Shown piece after piece: positions 1 to 11,183 of a stretch of 13,458 bases of DNA. The notes beneath the pieces were generated by a model, which did not search any database, was not told the DNA's origin, and saw only the letters and a list, made by a program, of their open reading frames with translations. Origin of the DNA: Amoeboradix gromovi X-113 (lineage: Eukaryota > Fungi > Sanchytriomycota); NCBI GenBank assembly GCA_018985225.1, contig JADGIF010000233.1, forward strand, positions 1 to 13,458, written 5' to 3'. The position numbers and the translations under genes were made by a program. Position 1 is the stretch's first letter. Each line of letters opens with the position of its first letter.

Positions 1-228
1 TTATTTGAAATAACGATTGGATGAAAGAGTAAGAGAATAGCTGTACAGAATATTTATTTTTGAAATTCGATACAAAAAGTTATTTATTTTCCTTTTATAC
101 TCGTCAACTCCGCAAATAGCTGAATGTCCACTCGCCTCTTAAATCCATAAAATTAATAAAGCTGAAATAATGTTCCAAGTTGTTACAGAAAGTTAGTCCA
201 GTTTTTATATTTGATGTCTCAAATGTAT
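1..228 (+). pseudogene. TnpB/Fanzor2-like internal relic (copy D; REC/WED region)
   Basis: Frame 1 reads LFEITIG*KSKRIAVQNIYF*NSIQKVIYFPFIL, resembling the F..KSKK..QSI...FP segment of TnpB/Fanzor2. 164-228 reads EIMFQVVTES*SSFYI*C. 163-228 aligns at DNA level with 5221-5285, which runs into a RuvC-I-like motif, and partly with 4820-4865 on the minus strand. Confidence 0.6.
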
Positions 229-3042: not shown

Positions 3043-4375
3043 CTATACCTTTTCTTTTGGCCTATACATTATTATTCGTTTACCTGCTTGCCTTGGAGGG
3101 TTTACAGACTCTTTTTGCAGCCAGTTATCTACTATATTAGTGCGCTTTACCATTTTTAGCTTCTAGCCGAGTGTTGGCAAAGTTGAGCTTCTTTTTTAAA
3201 TTTGTATTTTCATGCTCCACATTGTCAAATTCTAATTCTGATTCATTGTAATTACTCTTGTACTGTTTTAACTCAGCAGAAAGTTGATTAATCTTTTTCT
3301 CTTGTGTCAAGGCAAGCTGAGTAGACAGCTTCAGCTTGTTTTTTGAATTTTTCAGTTCCATTTCAAGCTGCTCAATAATGGTATTTCCCTTGTTGACTTC
3401 GTTGTTGGTGTTATTAACAGAAGATGCAACAGACTTGAGTTGATTCTCTAAGTCACTCACCTTGCGCTCGATTTCTTGTTTCTCTTGAATATTAGAATTC
3501 AGATCAGATTCAATTCTTGAAATATGAAACGACTTTGATTTAATCTCTTCTTCTAACAAGGAAATTCTATTCTTGGAAATTGCTAGTTGATTTTGATAGT
3601 TATTACAATCCCTGTTAACTTGTTGCTGATCCTGCAGCTGTCTTGTAGATTCCTGTTGAAATCGCTGCAGCTCATTCTGTAAAGCCGAGTTTTGATTCTT
3701 AAGGGTACTTAGTTGCATTTTCAAACTTTCATTCTCAGTTTGAAGCGCTCTGACACTCTGCTTAGACTCTGAAAGTAAAGTATTAAGATCTTTGTCTAAA
3801 TTAGACATATCCAACTCATTTTGAGCAGTAATATCCTTCAATTCCTGTTGGAACTTGGACTGCTGGTTTATAAAGGCAGAAGTCTTTTCGTTTAAAGAGT
3901 CCTGCAGTTCTTTGATCTTCAAACTATATTGCCGTATTTCTGCATTTAGTCTGGCCTCATTTTTGGCAGATTTGGTTTTCAAAAGAGAATGGTCGTTTTT
4001 TTCTGAAAGAATTTTAGCAGCCAAATAATCATTTTTCACTTCAACACTGGGAATTTCCATTTTTAATTTCAAATGACAGATCGCGCGCCAACTAGTTATC
4101 TCAACTAATTTAAATTGGCTCTCTTTATCAAACACTATAGTCCATTCTTCTTTATTTAAGAGTTCCTTGAATTGCTCAACAAACTGATCGTATTCCATTC
4201 TTAGATCTTGTTCTTTAACTAGTTCCTCAAATATTGTCGGTGTCAAATGTAGTAATGCTAAAAATGTGGGATCTAAGGGGTCACTTAGAATTATAACTAC
4301 TGCATTTTTGATTTGAATTTCTAAATCAAGTGCATGGGTTTCCCCATACTTCTGGACTTTGAGATGATAAAGCAT
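3043..4375 (-). CDS. SAS6: Centriole cartwheel protein SAS-6, 2 exons (4375-3151, 3131-3043), ~437 aa
   Basis: Head-domain motifs LSDPLDPTFL, FEELVKEQDL...F, LVEITSWRAICHLKL and YLA, followed by a long coiled coil with NEVNKGNTII. Splicing 3132-3150 adds NVDNWLQKE, matching the N.V..WL.K motif that ends the SAS-6 coiled coil. Confidence 0.9.
3132..3150 (-). other. 19-nt spliceosomal intron in SAS6
   Basis: GTAAAGCGCACTAATATAG with a CTAAT branch motif. It contains the TAA that ends the track ORF. A tandem TAG acceptor 3 nt further on (22-nt intron) is also in frame. Confidence 0.75.
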
Positions 4376-4440: not shown

Positions 4441-4565
4441 TTCCTCAAGGGCACTGGTTTCTAAGAGGATCAAGAACAGGCGTAATGAACTTACAATAGT
4501 AGTTGCTCCGTTACAGCAGCTGCTCACGCTTTTACTGCCGACGAGCAATTAAACATCGATGCATA
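4441..4565 (-). ncRNA. Diverged omegaRNA-like scaffold / right end of copy C
   Basis: GGCAGTAAAAGCGTGAGCAGCTGCTGTAACGGAG matches copy B GGTAGTGAAAGCGTGAGCAACCACTGTAACGGAG. It ends TTGAGGAA at a similar distance from the RuvC-III motif. Confidence 0.55.
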
Positions 4566-5160
4566 TATTTCAAGCAAATGTTACTTGCTAACATAATGTC
4601 TCTCTCCACTTGTTAGTGACCACTTTCTATATCTTTAATAATTCTGGTGCCTTGAAAGTTCTTGACAAAGAGCTGGTTTCTCTTTCAAGGCCTTTTTTCT
4701 TATTGGAAAAGGCTCGCAGATAGTTTAATCACTTTTGGGAAAGACCAACCTACGTTTGAATAGCCTTCAAATGGTACAGTAATCAATTTTTCATGTGGAT
4801 ATGCATTGAACGAGCCTTTTAGAAGAGTGTATTGTGGGACACCAAATATAAAAACTAGACTTAGTCGTCTTTAAAGGAGGTGCTCCATAAGGAGGCAATA
4901 CTATTATTAATAAAAGTACTTCTTCTTTCATTAATGTCATTTTTCTCTTTAAAATGGAATATGTTACTTGAACCACTATCTCTTTCAAATAAGGTCCTTG
5001 AGTGTCTTAGCAAAAGGTGCATTTTCGTTATCTACTACTTTACCACTATTATCTTCCATTTTCTTTTTCCTCTTACCGCCTTTCGTATAACTTATTTTTG
5101 TATTCTCTTGTTCTTGTTAATCATTGTTTCCAAGATTTTGATGGATGAAAAACTTTTATA
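4441..5160 (-). mobile_element. Decayed, multiply deleted TnpB/Fanzor element (copy C)
   Basis: Motifs occur in TnpB order on the minus strand: IKVFHPSKSWKQ*L (N-terminal K..P..QK-like), NIFHFKEKND, KSSFYIWCP, then one frame from 4801 reading YPHEKLITVPFEGYS...PKVIK...GTRIIKDIESGH*QVERDIMLASNICLKYMH. The right end is homologous to copies A and B. The left limit is approximate. Confidence 0.75.
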
Positions 5161-5218
5161 CTAAAATAATTTACTTGAACAGATTAATTTAATTTAATTT
5201 ACTATCGGTTCATACGCA

Positions 5219-5350
5219 CTTGAAATAATGATTCAAATTGTATCAGAAAGCAAGTCTAGTTTTATATTTGATGTCCAAAGAGTATCTTCTAAGGAATCCA
5301 GTAGATTTGACAAATTTTGGCTTTGGAACTTGGTGACATTTGCCATAGAT
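5219..5350 (+). pseudogene. TnpB/Fanzor WED + RuvC-I fragment (copy E)
   Basis: LEIMIQIVSESKSS, frameshift, FYI*CPK...QILALELG (5311-5334), frameshift, TFA (5336-5344). This is a degenerate form of the RuvC-I I.ALDPG.RTF motif. DNA homology to 163-228. Confidence 0.65.
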
Positions 5351-5414: not shown

Positions 5415-5439
5415 AATTCAATAAATAATTTATTGAATT
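5415..5439. repeat. Perfect inverted repeat, 12-bp arms, 1-nt spacer
   Basis: AATTCAATAAAT-A-ATTTATTGAATT, with AATAAA on both strands, 4 nt outside the right end of copy A. Confidence 0.85.
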
Positions 5440-5443
5440 TGGA

Positions 5444-5570
5444 CTCCTCGTTAAAAGTACTGATTTCCGAGAAAACCGAGAATTTTCACAGAGAAACTAG
5501 CACTGCTACCAAATCTATTTAGTTACTGTTCACGCTTTCACTACCCTGAGGCGGGATTGAATAAGGATAC
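5444..5570 (-). ncRNA. omegaRNA-like scaffold of copy A
   Basis: 39-nt block 5530-5568 is identical to 11034-11072. Hairpin GAAAATT-CTC-GGTTTTC. Ends TTTTAACGAGGAG, where homology to copy B stops. Confidence 0.7.
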
Positions 5571-5734
5571 ACATATTTGATGTATATATTCCTTGCTGCC
5601 ATATAATCTCTAATGTTGCACATATTGTAAGACTAACACACGACAGCTTTGTCTGGTCACATATGAATTGTTAAATAAATAGTTTACAAGATAATTATCT
5701 TTTATCTCTTTCTAGGCATTAAAAGACAACTAAT

Positions 5735-5955
5735 TGTTCATGCCTGAACTAGGTTTTAAATGTTGATGAGTGTATGCTGTAACTATTAGTTGTTTCTTCA
5801 GGTTTTACATGTTCAGGATTACACCCATTGATTCCATTTACCATTTGCGAAAATGAAGAATATCAAGTAGTTAAGGTACTGTAAAAACAGGGAGAGTCAT
5901 GTCATTATATAAAAATACATAGAGATTCTCGACAAATGACTTGTTTAACAAGATT
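5735..5955 (+). pseudogene. Partner ORF relic of copy A (possible recombinase)
   Basis: VDECML*LLVVSSGFTCSGLHPLIPFTICENEEYQVVKVL*K/TGRVMSLYKNT*RFSTNDLFNK. Substitutions against the copy B minus-strand frame are conservative. Confidence 0.6.
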
Positions 5956-5989
5956 CGTAGCTGAAAGCGTCTTTCTGAAAACAAGGAGT

Positions 5990-6390: not shown

Positions 6391-8521
6391 TTAAATATTT
6401 GCCAAAACCTCGTTTGCTTTCTTGTACTTTTCCAGTACTTGCTTTACCTTTTCCCTCTCTTTCACTATCAATTCGTCTTCCATAAACAGCTCCTTGATTT
6501 TGTCAGGTTTATATAAACTTTCAACCAATGTTGGATGTAATTCCTTTGTCACACCATTTACCAAGTTGTGCATTATCGCTTTGGGTACTAAATCAAGCAG
6601 CGATTGTCTGACTATCTCAAAGTATGAAATCATCAGTCTTCTTATCAACTGTACTTCAAATTGCTCTTTCTCCGTTAGTTCCTGGTGATGAGTAAACTGA
6701 TTTGGCGTTATTATCCCGGGAACTGCTGTAGGCAATGTAGATAAAGAAAACCCGTCATTAGGATTAGGAATCATTGACTTCCTGTTATTTACAGGTTTTA
6801 AGTCTCTTTTTTTAAAGAAGTACTGCAGCAAAGATTCCTTTTGCTCATCACTTTCGATCTCATCCAGACCCAACACTGTACTATTGCTGCTGAAGTCTAG
6901 ATTGTTATTGTTTATATTTCCACTTGCATTGGTCTGAAAGTTAGGTGACCGTGGCTGTGGGGATCTACTTCGCTCCACCCGTTGTTTATGTTGTTTGTCC
7001 ACTTGAATCGGGTCCCTGGTATCTCTACCCTGCATTGCAGCACCAACCCCAATAAAATCTGGATGGTTCGTGTTGATATATGCCATTTCAATATCCACTA
7101 AACTTGTGACATATGCTAGAGATGGATCCAGTTTATCTCTTAAAAGTCGATCCACTATCTCTACGTTAATTCTAAATACCAGTTAAACACGACGCTAATC
7201 TCGGATATCGCTCTATGTCTTTTGTACAGCACTCAACTGACAATTTCATCAATTCATCGAAAACCATTTCTACACATTTGATAGCAGGATGCAACAACCT
7301 CTTTAGTTGCGGTTTGATCAGTAATTCAAACGCTTTCTCTGGAATGAACAAAGTGGTTCTGCTACCAGTTGCATTACGAATGGCGGTCTTGATATCTTGA
7401 TCAGTCAATTGATCTAAAGGCATAACCTGGTTTATAAGATTGTTATACACGGTATGGTAGAGGTAATAGATCCTCGCACCTGCACACAATTCCAAGGTAT
7501 CAGCTTGACCATCAATGCTTTTGTTAAATTTGTCGCTGTAGCTGCTGATTATACGCAATAAGGAGCTTAGTGAGACATCATGAACAGGTCCAAATTGATC
7601 GTATTCAGATTGATGCTGCTGCATCATCAATGATATTTTTGATTTTAACTCTGGTAACTGCTGCTTAATGTGGTTGACCAAGATTTTATGCAGCAATTGA
7701 AGTAAATAGAACACACCGCACTTGTGAGCAATTGAAGGGAAGTGAGTGGTAAACAGCTCATGCTCCATTTCTCTCGACTCTAAATGACTTGTTTGAAATT
7801 GACCAGGAATTCCAGGTTTATTGATAACAGCAGTGAAGCCATAATAAAGAGAAAACGTTTTCCCTACTAATATTTCGTGTAATGAGTTTAATCCGTCTTT
7901 ATTGTTTGATATGCTGTTGAAGAACAAATCAGATTTAGTTAATACGCCGATAGTTCTTTTCCCATTTGGGTCGACTAGTCTGCACAACCTAAGAGAATCA
8001 GAAGTAGAAAGGTCATTCATACAGGTGGAAACGGCTAGCAATAAAGCGTTCTCTTTTCTTGCGTAGTGGCGAACTAATTGTTCAATCTGTTCATCTAAAT
8101 CATTCGGTTGATGAACAGTAGGAATCTGTATGAGGCCTGGAAGATCAATTAAAGTTAGATTGACGACCTGCTTTGAGAAGAGCTTGAGATATATTGGAGT
8201 AGAGCTGATATGCTGAATAGACTTAGCAATGTTTAGCAATTCATTTTGGACTTGACCAATTGGGATGGAATTCTTTAGATGTAAAAATTCAGCATATCCG
8301 TCTTGATCATTTTCATCTTCTATGTGAATTAATTGAAGAATTAGCGGCTGCTTAGTGCACATATCGACACCTATTGGTAATATTTCATAGCCACACAGAT
8401 GGTTGATCAGGGATGACTTGCCGCTACTTTGGGCACCTATTACGACTAATGACGGAAGATCAACAGACAAATGAAGAGTTTGAAGCTGATTAATTAATTC
8501 AATTACATTGACATTAGACAT
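6391..8521 (-). CDS. DNM1: Dynamin-related GTPase Dnm1/Drp1, 2 exons (8521-7180, 7160-6391), 703 aa
   Basis: G1 GAQSSGKSS, G3 DLPG, G4 TKSD. ELCAGARIYY is Dnm1-type rather than Vps1 ELSGGARISF. Also YINTNHPDF and GED SYFEIVR...DLVPKAIMH. The two track ORFs join in frame across a 19-nt intron (CLT-E-IVDRLL). Confidence 0.92.
7161..7179 (-). other. 19-nt spliceosomal intron in DNM1
   Basis: GTATTTAGAATTAACGTAG with a TTAAC branch motif. Removal gives RYPRLASCLTEIVDRLLRD, collinear with the Dnm1 middle domain. Confidence 0.92.
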
Positions 8522-8709
8522 TGTTACAGGGAACCGTGCTTCAATTTTTTTAATCAAAGCAAGTAGTACTTTGAGACAGAAAAGGTAGCGAAAAGGTACC
8601 GTAATTGTAAAAATATCATTTATTTCTGATTCGTCTTAATTTTTTAGGGGGGTAGTACATTTTTGAGAGGGGTGTATGTAAAGATTGCTTGTGCCTCTTG
8701 GTGTAAAAC

Positions 8710-9597
8710 ATGAACTTTCGGATACTCTCATTAACAGCAGGAATCTTAAGTTTTATTGTTGCTTTTTTCTGGCTATTTTGCGTTATAGGAGGCTCAAATG
8801 CAGATGGGATTCGTGAAGCATCATTTATTGAAATTCAGCGGGATATGATAAGCGGAATGAGTACGGGTATGGGTGGCATGGGTATGGGCATGGGCATGGG
8901 CATGGGTATGGGTATGGGTATGGGTGGCATGGGTATGGGTATGGGTATGGGTATGATGCCTTCATATAGAGTAACTTTTTCCCTAAGTTCATGGTGTGTG
9001 TATCAATACAAACTGCCTACTGGGATGCCGACACCTTTATGGGGAGATCTCGGTGATCTCCCATCCTACGAAATTGAAATGGAGGGTAATTCAGTAATTC
9101 AATGCGTTCATCCTTGGGTTGCTTTAAATGACCGGCGGATCCTCCTCACTCTAGCACAAGTAATTGGCTTGCAAAGTCCAATGTTGTATATGGGGGACTC
9201 ATTTCTTTTGGACAGAGGCTCATCAATGTATTATTTCCTTGAAGTACTTTATTACCTTATGCTTATATTTAGTTCCATTACGGCCATCGTTGCAGTTGTT
9301 GCTGTCACATTACGGCGCCAAATATTACCAGCCATTTCTGTTTCATGCTCTTGCTGCGTCTTACTTCCAGCTATAATTGCCTTTTCTATCTGGACTTTTA
9401 TATATTCTAGATTCTGCAGCTATATCGAGTTTGGAAACATGTGGAGCAATGATGTTTGGATTAGACTGGGCGCGTTATATTGGCTAACTGTGGTTGGCAC
9501 AGTTATTTCGATAGTAGTTGCGATATTTGCACTTCTTAGTTGTCTGCAAATGAGAAGAGAACGCCCTGAACCTAAAGGTCTTACTTCTTCGCCTTGA
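8710..9597 (+). CDS. Four-TM membrane protein, Sur7/PalI (claudin-like) type, with a Gly-Met repeat in the first loop
   Basis: N-terminal TM, a large loop containing TFSLSSWC...C (cf. GLW..C...C), then three further hydrophobic helices with RLG..YWL before the last. Confidence 0.7.
   Translation: MNFRILSLTAGILSFIVAFFWLFCVIGGSNADGIREASFIEIQRDMISGMSTGMGGMGMGMGMGMGMGMGMGGMGMGMGMGMMPSYRVTFSLSSWCVYQYKLPTGMPTPLWGDLGDLPSYEIEMEGNSVIQCVHPWVALNDRRILLTLAQVIGLQSPMLYMGDSFLLDRGSSMYYFLEVLYYLMLIFSSITAIVAVVAVTLRRQILPAISVSCSCCVLLPAIIAFSIWTFIYSRFCSYIEFGNMWSNDVWIRLGALYWLTVVGTVISIVVAIFALLSCLQMRRERPEPKGLTSSP
8866..8958 (+). repeat. Coding hexamer tandem repeat (GGYATG)n = (Gly-Met)n
   Basis: ggtatg/ggcatg units with two extra-Gly interruptions. 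The frame is preserved. Confidence 0.95.
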
Positions 9598-10389: not shown

Positions 10390-10905
10390 TTAACATGTGG
10401 CTGCTGGAATTTTGAGTATATCAGATCTCAGCAGTATGGAGTTCTAATCCGTATGACAGTATCGCTGTTTTCTAATACAGCTTAAAATGAAGAAAAACCG
10501 CGGAATTTTAATGCAGAGTTGAAGCAATACTGATAAAACCCATAATGCTTCTTGAAAAATCTTTTCAAGCAAACTGATTTTACGTCCTTCGGATTTCAGA
10601 TGAATTGCATAAATCAATAGCGCCAATCAGCAGTGGTAGTCCCTGATCTAGTGTAACAATCCACTGCCATAAACAGCTCGATTGTTTTCTTGAATATATC
10701 ATTTGTTGCGAATCTGTATCCATTTTTGTATAATTTCAAGACTTTTCCAGATTTTTCTAATAGCTCAAATACTCGATATTCTTCCTTTTCGCAAATGGTA
10801 AATGGAATAAATAGATGTTATCCTGAATATGTCAATTCTAAAGAAATAACTAGTAGGTACAGCATACATTCGTCTCAGACTGATAAGCTGGTCCAAACAC
10901 GGAAA
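10390..10905 (-). pseudogene. Partner ORF relic of copy B; tentatively tyrosine-recombinase-like
   Basis: One frame with scattered stops: DECMLYLLVISLELTYSG*HLFIPFTICEKEEYRVFELLEKSGKVLKLYKNGYRFATNDIFKKTIELFMAVDCYTRSG...LKRFFKKHYGFYQYCFNSALKFRGFSSF*. After a frameshift it reads AILSYGLELHTAEI*Y. Confidence 0.55.
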
Positions 10906-10906
10906 T

Positions 10907-11040
10907 TCGATGCCATGTACGAGGTATGGTACTTTAAAGAAAACCAACTTAGAAACCTGAACCTGTAAAAAGTGTCATTTGAAGATAGATAGAGATCATA
11001 TGGCAGCAAGGAACATATACATCAAGTATATGCATCCTTA
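10907..11040 (+). pseudogene. TnpB/Fanzor C-terminal zinc ribbon + RuvC-III
   Basis: SMPCTRYGTLKKTNLET*TCKKCHLKIDRDHMAARNIYIKY matches the S..CxxCG...CxxC...DRD.NAARNI signature. The second Cys is TAT rather than TGT, and there is an in-frame TGA at 10958. Confidence 0.9.
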
Positions 11041-11158
11041 TTCAATCCCGCCTCAGGGTAGTGAAAGCGTGAGCAACCACTGTAACGGAGATCTAGCATT
11101 GCTAGTTTCTCTGTGGAAATTCTCGAATTTCTCGGAAATCATGTCTTTTAATGAGGAG
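11030..11158 (+). ncRNA. omegaRNA-like scaffold of copy B (guide predicted from ~11159)
   Basis: Hairpins CCC-GCCTCA-GGG, ACGGAGA-TCTAGC-ATT-GCTAG-TT-TCTCTGT and GAAATT-CTCG-AATTTC. Loop CCTCA (11051-55) is complementary to terminal TGAGG (11152-56). Confidence 0.75.
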
Positions 11159-11183
11159 TATACATCAAACAAGGGTTATTCCT

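Follow-up and report, generated by a model that had tools for sequence, protein, structure and literature searches.

Three loci within a 13,458-nucleotide stretch of Amoeboradix gromovi X-113 DNA (contig JADGIF010000233.1, hereafter the window) were confirmed to be internally deleted copies of a Fanzor2 (eukaryotic TnpB) transposon, each carrying a structured right end. The window is one contig (C474) of a 10.5 Mb, 1319-contig assembly, with 36% GC. These three copies, A, B and C, are dead, non-functional miniature derivatives and not three copies of a working system. We consider it likely that they are non-autonomous members of an IS607-like Fanzor2 family which are mobilised in trans and whose right end constitutes an omegaRNA scaffold.

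Copy A is a complete miniature non-autonomous element of 485 bp on the plus strand (10674..11158), with left boundary CAGCTCGATTG and right boundary ...AATGAGGAG, which agree with the 28 left and 56 right junctions collected on other contigs. The best other genomic copies are 95% identical to it. Its left end and 5' leader (10674..10915, plus strand), defined by alignments of 21-25 copies, include the terminal motif CTCGATTGTTTTCTTGAATA, which recurs near the right end in direct orientation, and show neither an inverted repeat with the right end nor a target-site duplication (TSD). The Fanzor2 zinc ribbon and RuvC-III remnant (CTRYGTLKKTNLET*TCKKCHLKIDRDHMAARNI) follows at 10916..11017 (plus strand), as read from the translation. 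It contains a TGA stop at 10958-10960 and a damaged first knuckle (C to Y), and the 76-amino-acid piece after the stop gave no Pfam match at E<=0.01, because only half of the PF07282 domain remains. The sequence of the tail after this stop, CKKCHLKIDRDHMAARNI, had been identified correctly in the original prediction but was placed at 10964-11018; by reading and translation it ends at 11017 (10964-11017). The predicted omegaRNA-like scaffold (11030..11158, plus strand), derived from a consensus fold and pair counts, comprises the putative helices P1 (11047-11058, with CCUC in its loop at 11051-11054), P2 (11059-11082), P3 (11086-11114) and P4 (11116-11149), followed by the terminal GAGG (11153-11156). 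The adjoining 11159..11178 (plus strand) is unique DNA unlike the flanks of all other copies; by analogy with TnpB/Fanzor, any transcript of the copy A scaffold would continue into it and so gain its guide.

Repeat pairs, alignment and translation defined copy B as a 520-bp miniature element of a more diverged subtype on the minus strand (5444..5963), with a scaffold at ~5574-5444 and RDYMAARNI as the only nuclease remnant. Copy C (~4640-4441, minus strand) is an old solitary remnant with 73-85% identity to copy A, a tail reading ERDIMLASNI, a scaffold at ~4564-4441 and no recognisable left end; nothing in the genome is closer to it than ~75%. Translation thus recovered, on the minus strand in both cases, the two homologous tails that had been proposed. 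A repeat search of the window aligned 10990-11075 with 5527-5612 at 93% and 11094-11172 with 5430-5508 at 82%, copies A and B being 82-93% identical across three blocks, and aligned ~100 nt of copy A (10988-11090) with copy C (4506-4606) at 73-85%. The shared stretch terminates at GAGGAG in A (11158) and B (5444) and at GAGGAA in C (4441), with unrelated flanks beyond, as had been described from the letters of the window; repeat search and alignment agree on this in all three copies. The repeat also reaches leftwards beyond the tail originally noted, to the sharp left end CAGCTCGATTG at 10674 in A and at 5963 in B, so that each copy is a whole element of 450-620 bp and not a tail alone. From the RuvC D-E-D triad, copies A, B and C retain the last Asp only.

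In the window, these copies have as neighbours eukaryotic genes that encode MRG, SAS-6, dynamin, PWWP and WD40 proteins. We rejected an origin by contamination or from giant-virus DNA, as the copies lie between ordinary eukaryotic genes and on hundreds of contigs. The dynamin gene (Dynamin_N, Dynamin_M and GED) is encoded on the minus strand in two adjacent open frames, 6394-7155 and 7175-8557, pointing to a short intron, frameshift or misassembly. At 8710-9597 (plus strand), an open frame contains GGTATG/GGCATG hexamers (repeat at 8854-8955) that are translated as Gly-Met repeats, and has no Pfam match. Between copies C and B lies an unrelated repeat of ~440 bp with terminal inverted repeats (TIRs) of ~27 bp (4835-5276, with fragments at 163-228); it has 1137 first-look genomic candidates, and scored copies are 79-86% identical.

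The family to which copies A, B and C belong is abundant across the assembly, which puts their similarity far beyond chance. A 206-nt right-end query (10960-11165) returned 793 first-look candidates genome-wide, and all 40 of the 40 scored were 92-95% identical to it. At ~550 bp each, several hundred copies amount to roughly 4% of the 10.5 Mb genome. Paired copies are 443-621 bp long with sharp ends (CAGCTCG... / ...CGAGGAG), with one exception of 936 bp (C977), and sort into several deletion types that each retain a different length of the coding region. The right boundary was knife-sharp in a MAFFT alignment of 30 loci, and in all-against-all BLAST similarity stopped just as abruptly ~400 nt upstream, where the left end of the family reads CAGCTCGATTGTTTTCTTGAATAAATC. 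Among 56 non-redundant right junctions, information content fell to zero directly after ...TTTTAACGAGGAG, and across these and 28 non-redundant left junctions it was at background level just outside CAG...GAGGAG. The prediction of a sharp boundary shared by copies throughout the genome therefore held, with ~0 bits directly after GAGGAG. The final three bases, GAG, are 75-82% conserved, compared with 93-98% at interior positions. Position -1, immediately 5' of the left end, is a purine (A or G) in 25 of the 28 left junctions and is not G-rich.

Neither TIRs nor TSDs were present in the 31 copies for which both ends were available, or at the 28 left and 56 right junctions. The elements are therefore short, non-autonomous and abundant without being MITEs in the strict sense (TIR plus TSD), and "miniature IS607-type derivative" is a better name. 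Flanks of the 31 complete copies searched by BLAST against the fetched genome loci revealed no nested insertion and no uninterrupted paralogue. Of all dinucleotides, AG alone occurs at both junctions (C-AG-CTCG at the left; CGAGG-AG or CG-AG-GAG at the right). A direct motif, CTCGATTnTTTTCTYGRAA, lies at the left terminus and again 24-45 nt from the right end. We also weighed whether a eukaryotic TIR/DDE-type transposon could have acquired a Fanzor gene by capture, as in Fanzor1 or 'Fanzor2*' elements, so that the family would not be IS607-like. A second TnpB-like tail in this genome (NRDVNAASNI, on C826) would be in keeping with such capture, but the 31 paired copies lack TSDs, their two ends match at only 11/21 positions in inverted orientation, and the related nuclease genes adjoin serine recombinases only; capture by such an element is thus highly improbable. 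The C826 tail itself (...CQTCSRLWNRDVNAASNIWKIA; L058, minus strand, ~1381-2160) lies in a 260-amino-acid open frame which has no Pfam match of its own, on a contig with a weak PF01385 match, and may represent a second, Fanzor1-like family.

The coding remnant supports assignment of the family to Fanzor2, as judged from protein motifs and profiles. The family tail matched PF07282 (Cas12f1-like TNB zinc ribbon) at 560 first-look places, and 150 of 150 scored places exceeded the 26.3-bit cut-off, at 49-74 bits; the zinc-ribbon identity proposed for the window tail was thereby substantiated. Longer copies on C385 and C565, which share the window-family right end at 91-92%, also matched PF01385 (TnpB RuvC region), and a further copy, on C977, shares the last ~80 nt at 88%. 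The translation of the longer copies reads IALDPGVRKF, about 130 amino acids, then ECNESFTSQTCTRCGTLKKxNLETYTCTxCHLxIDRDHMAARNI (in outline, IALDPGVRKF ... ECNESFTSQTCTRCG ... CTxCHLxIDRDHMAARNI). The Fanzor molecular fingerprint consists of a DPG motif in RuvC-I and an alternative Glu placed six residues ahead of the first CxxC (PMC10711439). DPG, this Glu and DRD are all present in the C385, C565 and C977 copies, those on C385 and C565 reading DPG ... E-SFTSQT-CTRC-x12-CTxC-x4-D, and the same tail pattern was found in 107 of 120 database relatives. An intact RuvC D-E-D triad, absent from the window copies, can be read in the longer partial copies (IALDPGV..., ECNESFTSQTC and DRDHMAARNI), each of which carries a stop or frameshift, and in an intact open reading frame of a different lineage on C542. 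The Fanzor2-like label given to the window copies is consequently upheld by the fingerprint of the longer copies, by serine recombinases in sister lineages and by the mimivirus protein L79 as best relative.

It had also been suggested that an intact copy may exist elsewhere in the assembly. An intact nuclease ORF was indeed found, in another lineage; no full-length window-family copy, and no recombinase beside its left end, was found among the fetched genome sequence. The only intact nuclease ORF found, on C542, belongs to a lineage that differs from the window family, with about 54% identity over the shared tail (44-58% for individual copies). Here a resolvase-domain gene (PF00239, TnpA) lies directly upstream of, and overlaps, a Fanzor2-like ORF of 569-671 amino acids with PF12323 and PF07282 (68 bits). 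Its best solved relative is 9b0l, the mimivirus 'TnpB-like protein L79' (ApmFz2), at E 5e-16 with the three RuvC motifs aligned; the protein fits the Fanzor fingerprint apart from a first knuckle that is CxC, and EukProt holds an identical entry. In the same locus (L060, minus strand, ~3400-3500), the recombinase has a single in-frame stop at a conserved HTH tryptophan (TLRN*SKSGKI), and the nuclease frame is open, in another frame, across the whole recombinase-coding region.

Serine recombinases occur at 12 loci in the genome, several of them followed by diverged TnpB-like genes, and a recombinase lies directly upstream of the nuclease in the sister lineages on C542, C459, C46 and C392. None of the 12 loci is joined to a window-family left end. 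C46 and C477, 94% identical across a 269-bp overlap at contig ends, have the appearance of one full-length element present twice and interrupted each time by the end of a contig, so that intact copies may be present in the genome yet missing from the assembly. As a full-length master of the window family, C46/C477 was rejected, because the family is related to it at only 77-80%. In a further relative from a metagenome (L089, contig Ga0209194_1000962), a Fanzor2-type protein (P0022) with the tail DRDAMAARNIFIKHCCLKP adjoins an NCLDV major-capsid gene, which places it on a giant-virus contig and fits the view that giant viruses spread Fanzor2.

We then considered the history of the family as recorded in its sequence variants. 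Of the 30 closest copies, 23 have a TGA stop at one and the same site, two codons upstream of the second CxxC, and two others have TGC there as an intermediate. This common stop indicates that much of the amplification took place after the nuclease frame had died, and hence that the copies are non-autonomous. Selection was assessed in 22 'long-type' copies with a 144-codon open frame, for which ~22-26% of changes are expected to be synonymous. Among variants found in at least two copies, those in core codons 1-100 were synonymous in 37 cases and non-synonymous in 30 (codon positions 12/11/44), a mark of past purifying selection on the nuclease core. Singleton variants (23 synonymous, 86 non-synonymous) were neutral. 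The last 44 codons (101-144) had 3 synonymous and 22 non-synonymous shared variants: this tail is conserved, but not as protein. At 24 of the 27 sites where this could be tested, the shared variants of the long type are polymorphic in other deletion types as well. The simplest reading of these variants is that purifying selection acted in full-length nuclease genes and was followed by repeated deletion and recombination among copies, in which case a function of the truncated frame would not be needed.

Such a function is nevertheless the substance of one alternative, in which the 144-codon frame of the long subtype, containing the RuvC-II Glu, zinc ribbon and RuvC-III Asp without RuvC-I, would itself encode a working small protein, perhaps one that binds omegaRNA or has a regulatory role. 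An open frame of 142-149 codons is indeed kept in many copies, and the shared variants of the core are strongly biased towards synonymous changes, though a single deletion junction is common to all long-type copies. However, for the presence of the same variants in other deletion types at 24/27 sites, selection on full-length genes together with recombination among copies is the better explanation, the frame starts without an ATG, the most abundant subtype has a stop and singleton changes are neutral. We regard a small protein as very unlikely, and favour past selection on full-length nuclease genes.

The prediction of an omegaRNA-like scaffold of ~125 nt at the right end gained support from covariation with two foreign relatives, as modelled below. 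Rfam families searched over the whole window gave no match at E<=1. Folded as a single copy, a 172-nt segment was not better than shuffled sequences (z = -0.54), and a 128-nt fold (L004) was modestly better (z = -1.9). We built a covariance model, R1, from 17 family members. It scored copies A, B and C at 205.8, 176.8 and 111.5 bits, respectively, matches that follow by construction because all three were in the training set. Covariation within the family was modest, with 20 double-change cells compared with 10.6 in shuffled and 13-17 in slid alignments; the best within-family signal was a hairpin, GUAGUGA...UCACUG, in which A-U is replaced by G-C in five diverged copies.

Two Fanzor-type genes from outside this genome, both on metagenome contigs, also gave full-length R1 matches, placed precisely at their 3' ends. 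One (L088/L093) scored 38 bits and encodes a protein 48% identical to the window-family tail, and the other (L091/L092) scored 47 bits with 55% protein identity. Compared with the family across P1-P4, L088 keeps 29 of 31 ungapped pairs, 12 of them by changes on both sides, and in L091 P2 differs on both strands and the helix persists. A combined alignment (A3), which was fitted to the model and thus leans towards structure, contained 20 double-changed pairs and 31 double-changed cells, compared with 8.6 and 11.2 after shuffling (0/500) and 8-14 and 9-18 after sliding. Independent single-sequence folds gave the same layout of three to four hairpins closed by pairing of the 3'-terminal GAGG, with z-scores of -1.6 for L088, -1.9 for L004 and -3.1 for L091. 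In C542 and in the relatives L089 and L090, R1 matches were confined to the coding part, indicating that the scaffold is common to a sub-lineage and not to all Fanzor2. Together, model and alignments show the right ~125 nt to be a conserved, RNA-like structured module of four predicted helices that ends at the transposon boundary.

The closing interaction at this boundary has two candidate partners. One is the CCUC of the P1 loop (CCC-GCCUCU-GGG), with which the terminal GAGG can form pairs. In L088, CCUA together with a terminal CUAGG constitutes a compensatory change (CCUC/GAGG to CCUA/UAGG), and L091 retains CCUC and ...AAUGAGGAG. A first closing helix, of UCCUU (11035-11039) with the terminal GAGGA, is broken in L088 and conserved in L091, and was rejected. 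The CCUC of the P1 loop is thus the better-supported partner of GAGG in the model, L091 keeping both options.

Conservation of the right end could partly reflect recombinase binding sites. On a stronger form of this argument, the copies are inert relics whose right end, with its subterminal repeats, is a DNA site for a serine recombinase, and no omegaRNA is made or used today. The direct motif CTCGATTnTTTTCTYGRAA described above resembles subterminal repeats known from IS607-family ends (PMC6188088), and no intact nuclease ORF of the window family was found. The window of this motif also has the fewest shared variants along the element, in a profile from 22 copies that is noisy and too coarse for a fine map of constraint. 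However, a DNA site predicts no compensatory changes, whereas 12 pairs of L088 and P2 of L091 changed on both sides and the helices persist. The constraint extends over ~125 nt and so exceeds the short terminal segments on which IS607-type recombinases act, and purifying selection acted on the nuclease core during family diversification. We therefore think it unlikely that the copies are inert relics of this kind, and retain an omegaRNA scaffold as the preferred reading of the right end.

Each copy retains the left end, then a variable 3' part of the nuclease gene with zinc ribbon and RuvC-III, and finally ~125-170 nt of right end. In the mechanism that we propose, by analogy with TnpB and Fanzor, this right end would encode an omegaRNA scaffold, the last bases of which (GAGG, in ...CGAGGAG) would pair with the 5' CCUC. 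Transcription would run on into the flanking DNA to yield a guide of 15-20 nt, each copy having its own. A Fanzor2 encoded in trans would then cut the matching empty site, favouring restoration of the copy, as drawn from the TnpB/Fanzor literature (PMC10711439, PMC13565253). The family has amplified to several hundred copies, much of this after death of the nuclease ORF, which implies that mobility was supplied in trans. An IS607-type serine recombinase, working on ends that lack TIRs, would be the likeliest supplier. As AG is the sole dinucleotide at both junctions, analogy with the GG of IS607 suggests that the target-adjacent motif (TAM) may lie near 5'-CAG.

Several features of this family recall mimivirus L79/ApmFz2 (PDB 9B0L; PMC3627910, PMC11832414): the domains present and the RuvC fingerprint (DPG, a Glu six residues ahead of the zinc finger, DRDxxAxRNI), an adjacent serine recombinase (here in sister lineages), the lack of TIRs and TSDs, and a scaffold overlapping the 3' end of the ORF. 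The predicted GAGG:CCUC pairing likewise resembles the pseudoknot of the last scaffold bases with a 5' segment in ApmFz2 and TnpB (PMC11832414). However, the ApmFz2 scaffold is 205 nt long compared with ~125 nt here, its TAM is GGG where that of the present family would be CAG if CAG is target-derived, and its motif is xNAAxNI in place of HMAARNI. Unlike the mimivirus element, the window copies are miniature and dead, and are part of a cellular genome of 10.5 Mb that carries the family in hundreds of copies. Bacterial IS607 elements with TnpB (ISXfa1; PMC10711439) and IS607/IS1535 (PMC6188088) similarly have subterminal motifs and no inverted repeats or duplications. ISXfa1 produces a guide RNA of ~150 nt crossing the right boundary, with the fixed base or bases of the right junction belonging to the scaffold (PMC10711439). 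IS607 recombines at GG, whereas here AG is common to both junctions and the host is a eukaryote. PATE (IS200/IS605), the Fanzor1 elements CRe-1..3 and SfAV (PMC3627910, PMC10711439) are also short, with ends kept and proteins supplied in trans. In contrast to these, the present copies derive from an IS607-type Fanzor2, retain the whole scaffold and a piece of the nuclease gene, and outnumber coding copies by hundreds to one.

Since Fanzor2 nucleases and their right-end guide RNAs are known from earlier work, the biology is in its basics not new, and the family is largely expected. In the literature searched, we found no description of such a burst of miniature Fanzor2 copies, and the A. gromovi genome paper (PMC8371127) contains no word beginning 'transpos'. 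The scaffold model obtained here is compact (~125 nt), supported by covariation and fixed at its boundary by 56 junctions, and such models are still scarce for Fanzor2. The intact 671-amino-acid Fanzor2 candidate on C542 and the closest metagenomic relatives are directly testable. A more far-reaching possibility, which we hold to be doubtful, is that the hundreds of protein-less copies form a dispersed library of omegaRNA genes, each with its own flank as guide, and that these RNAs are loaded by one or a few Fanzor2 nucleases encoded in trans, which protect every miniature copy by restorative homing or serve the host for RNA-guided control at those sites. If this were true, there would be hundreds of guide-RNA genes in A. 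gromovi, a eukaryote, for each nuclease gene. Scaffold-bearing miniatures that make up ~4% of a gene-dense genome, with coding copies almost absent, bear on how OMEGA systems persist and on the use of guide RNAs in trans.
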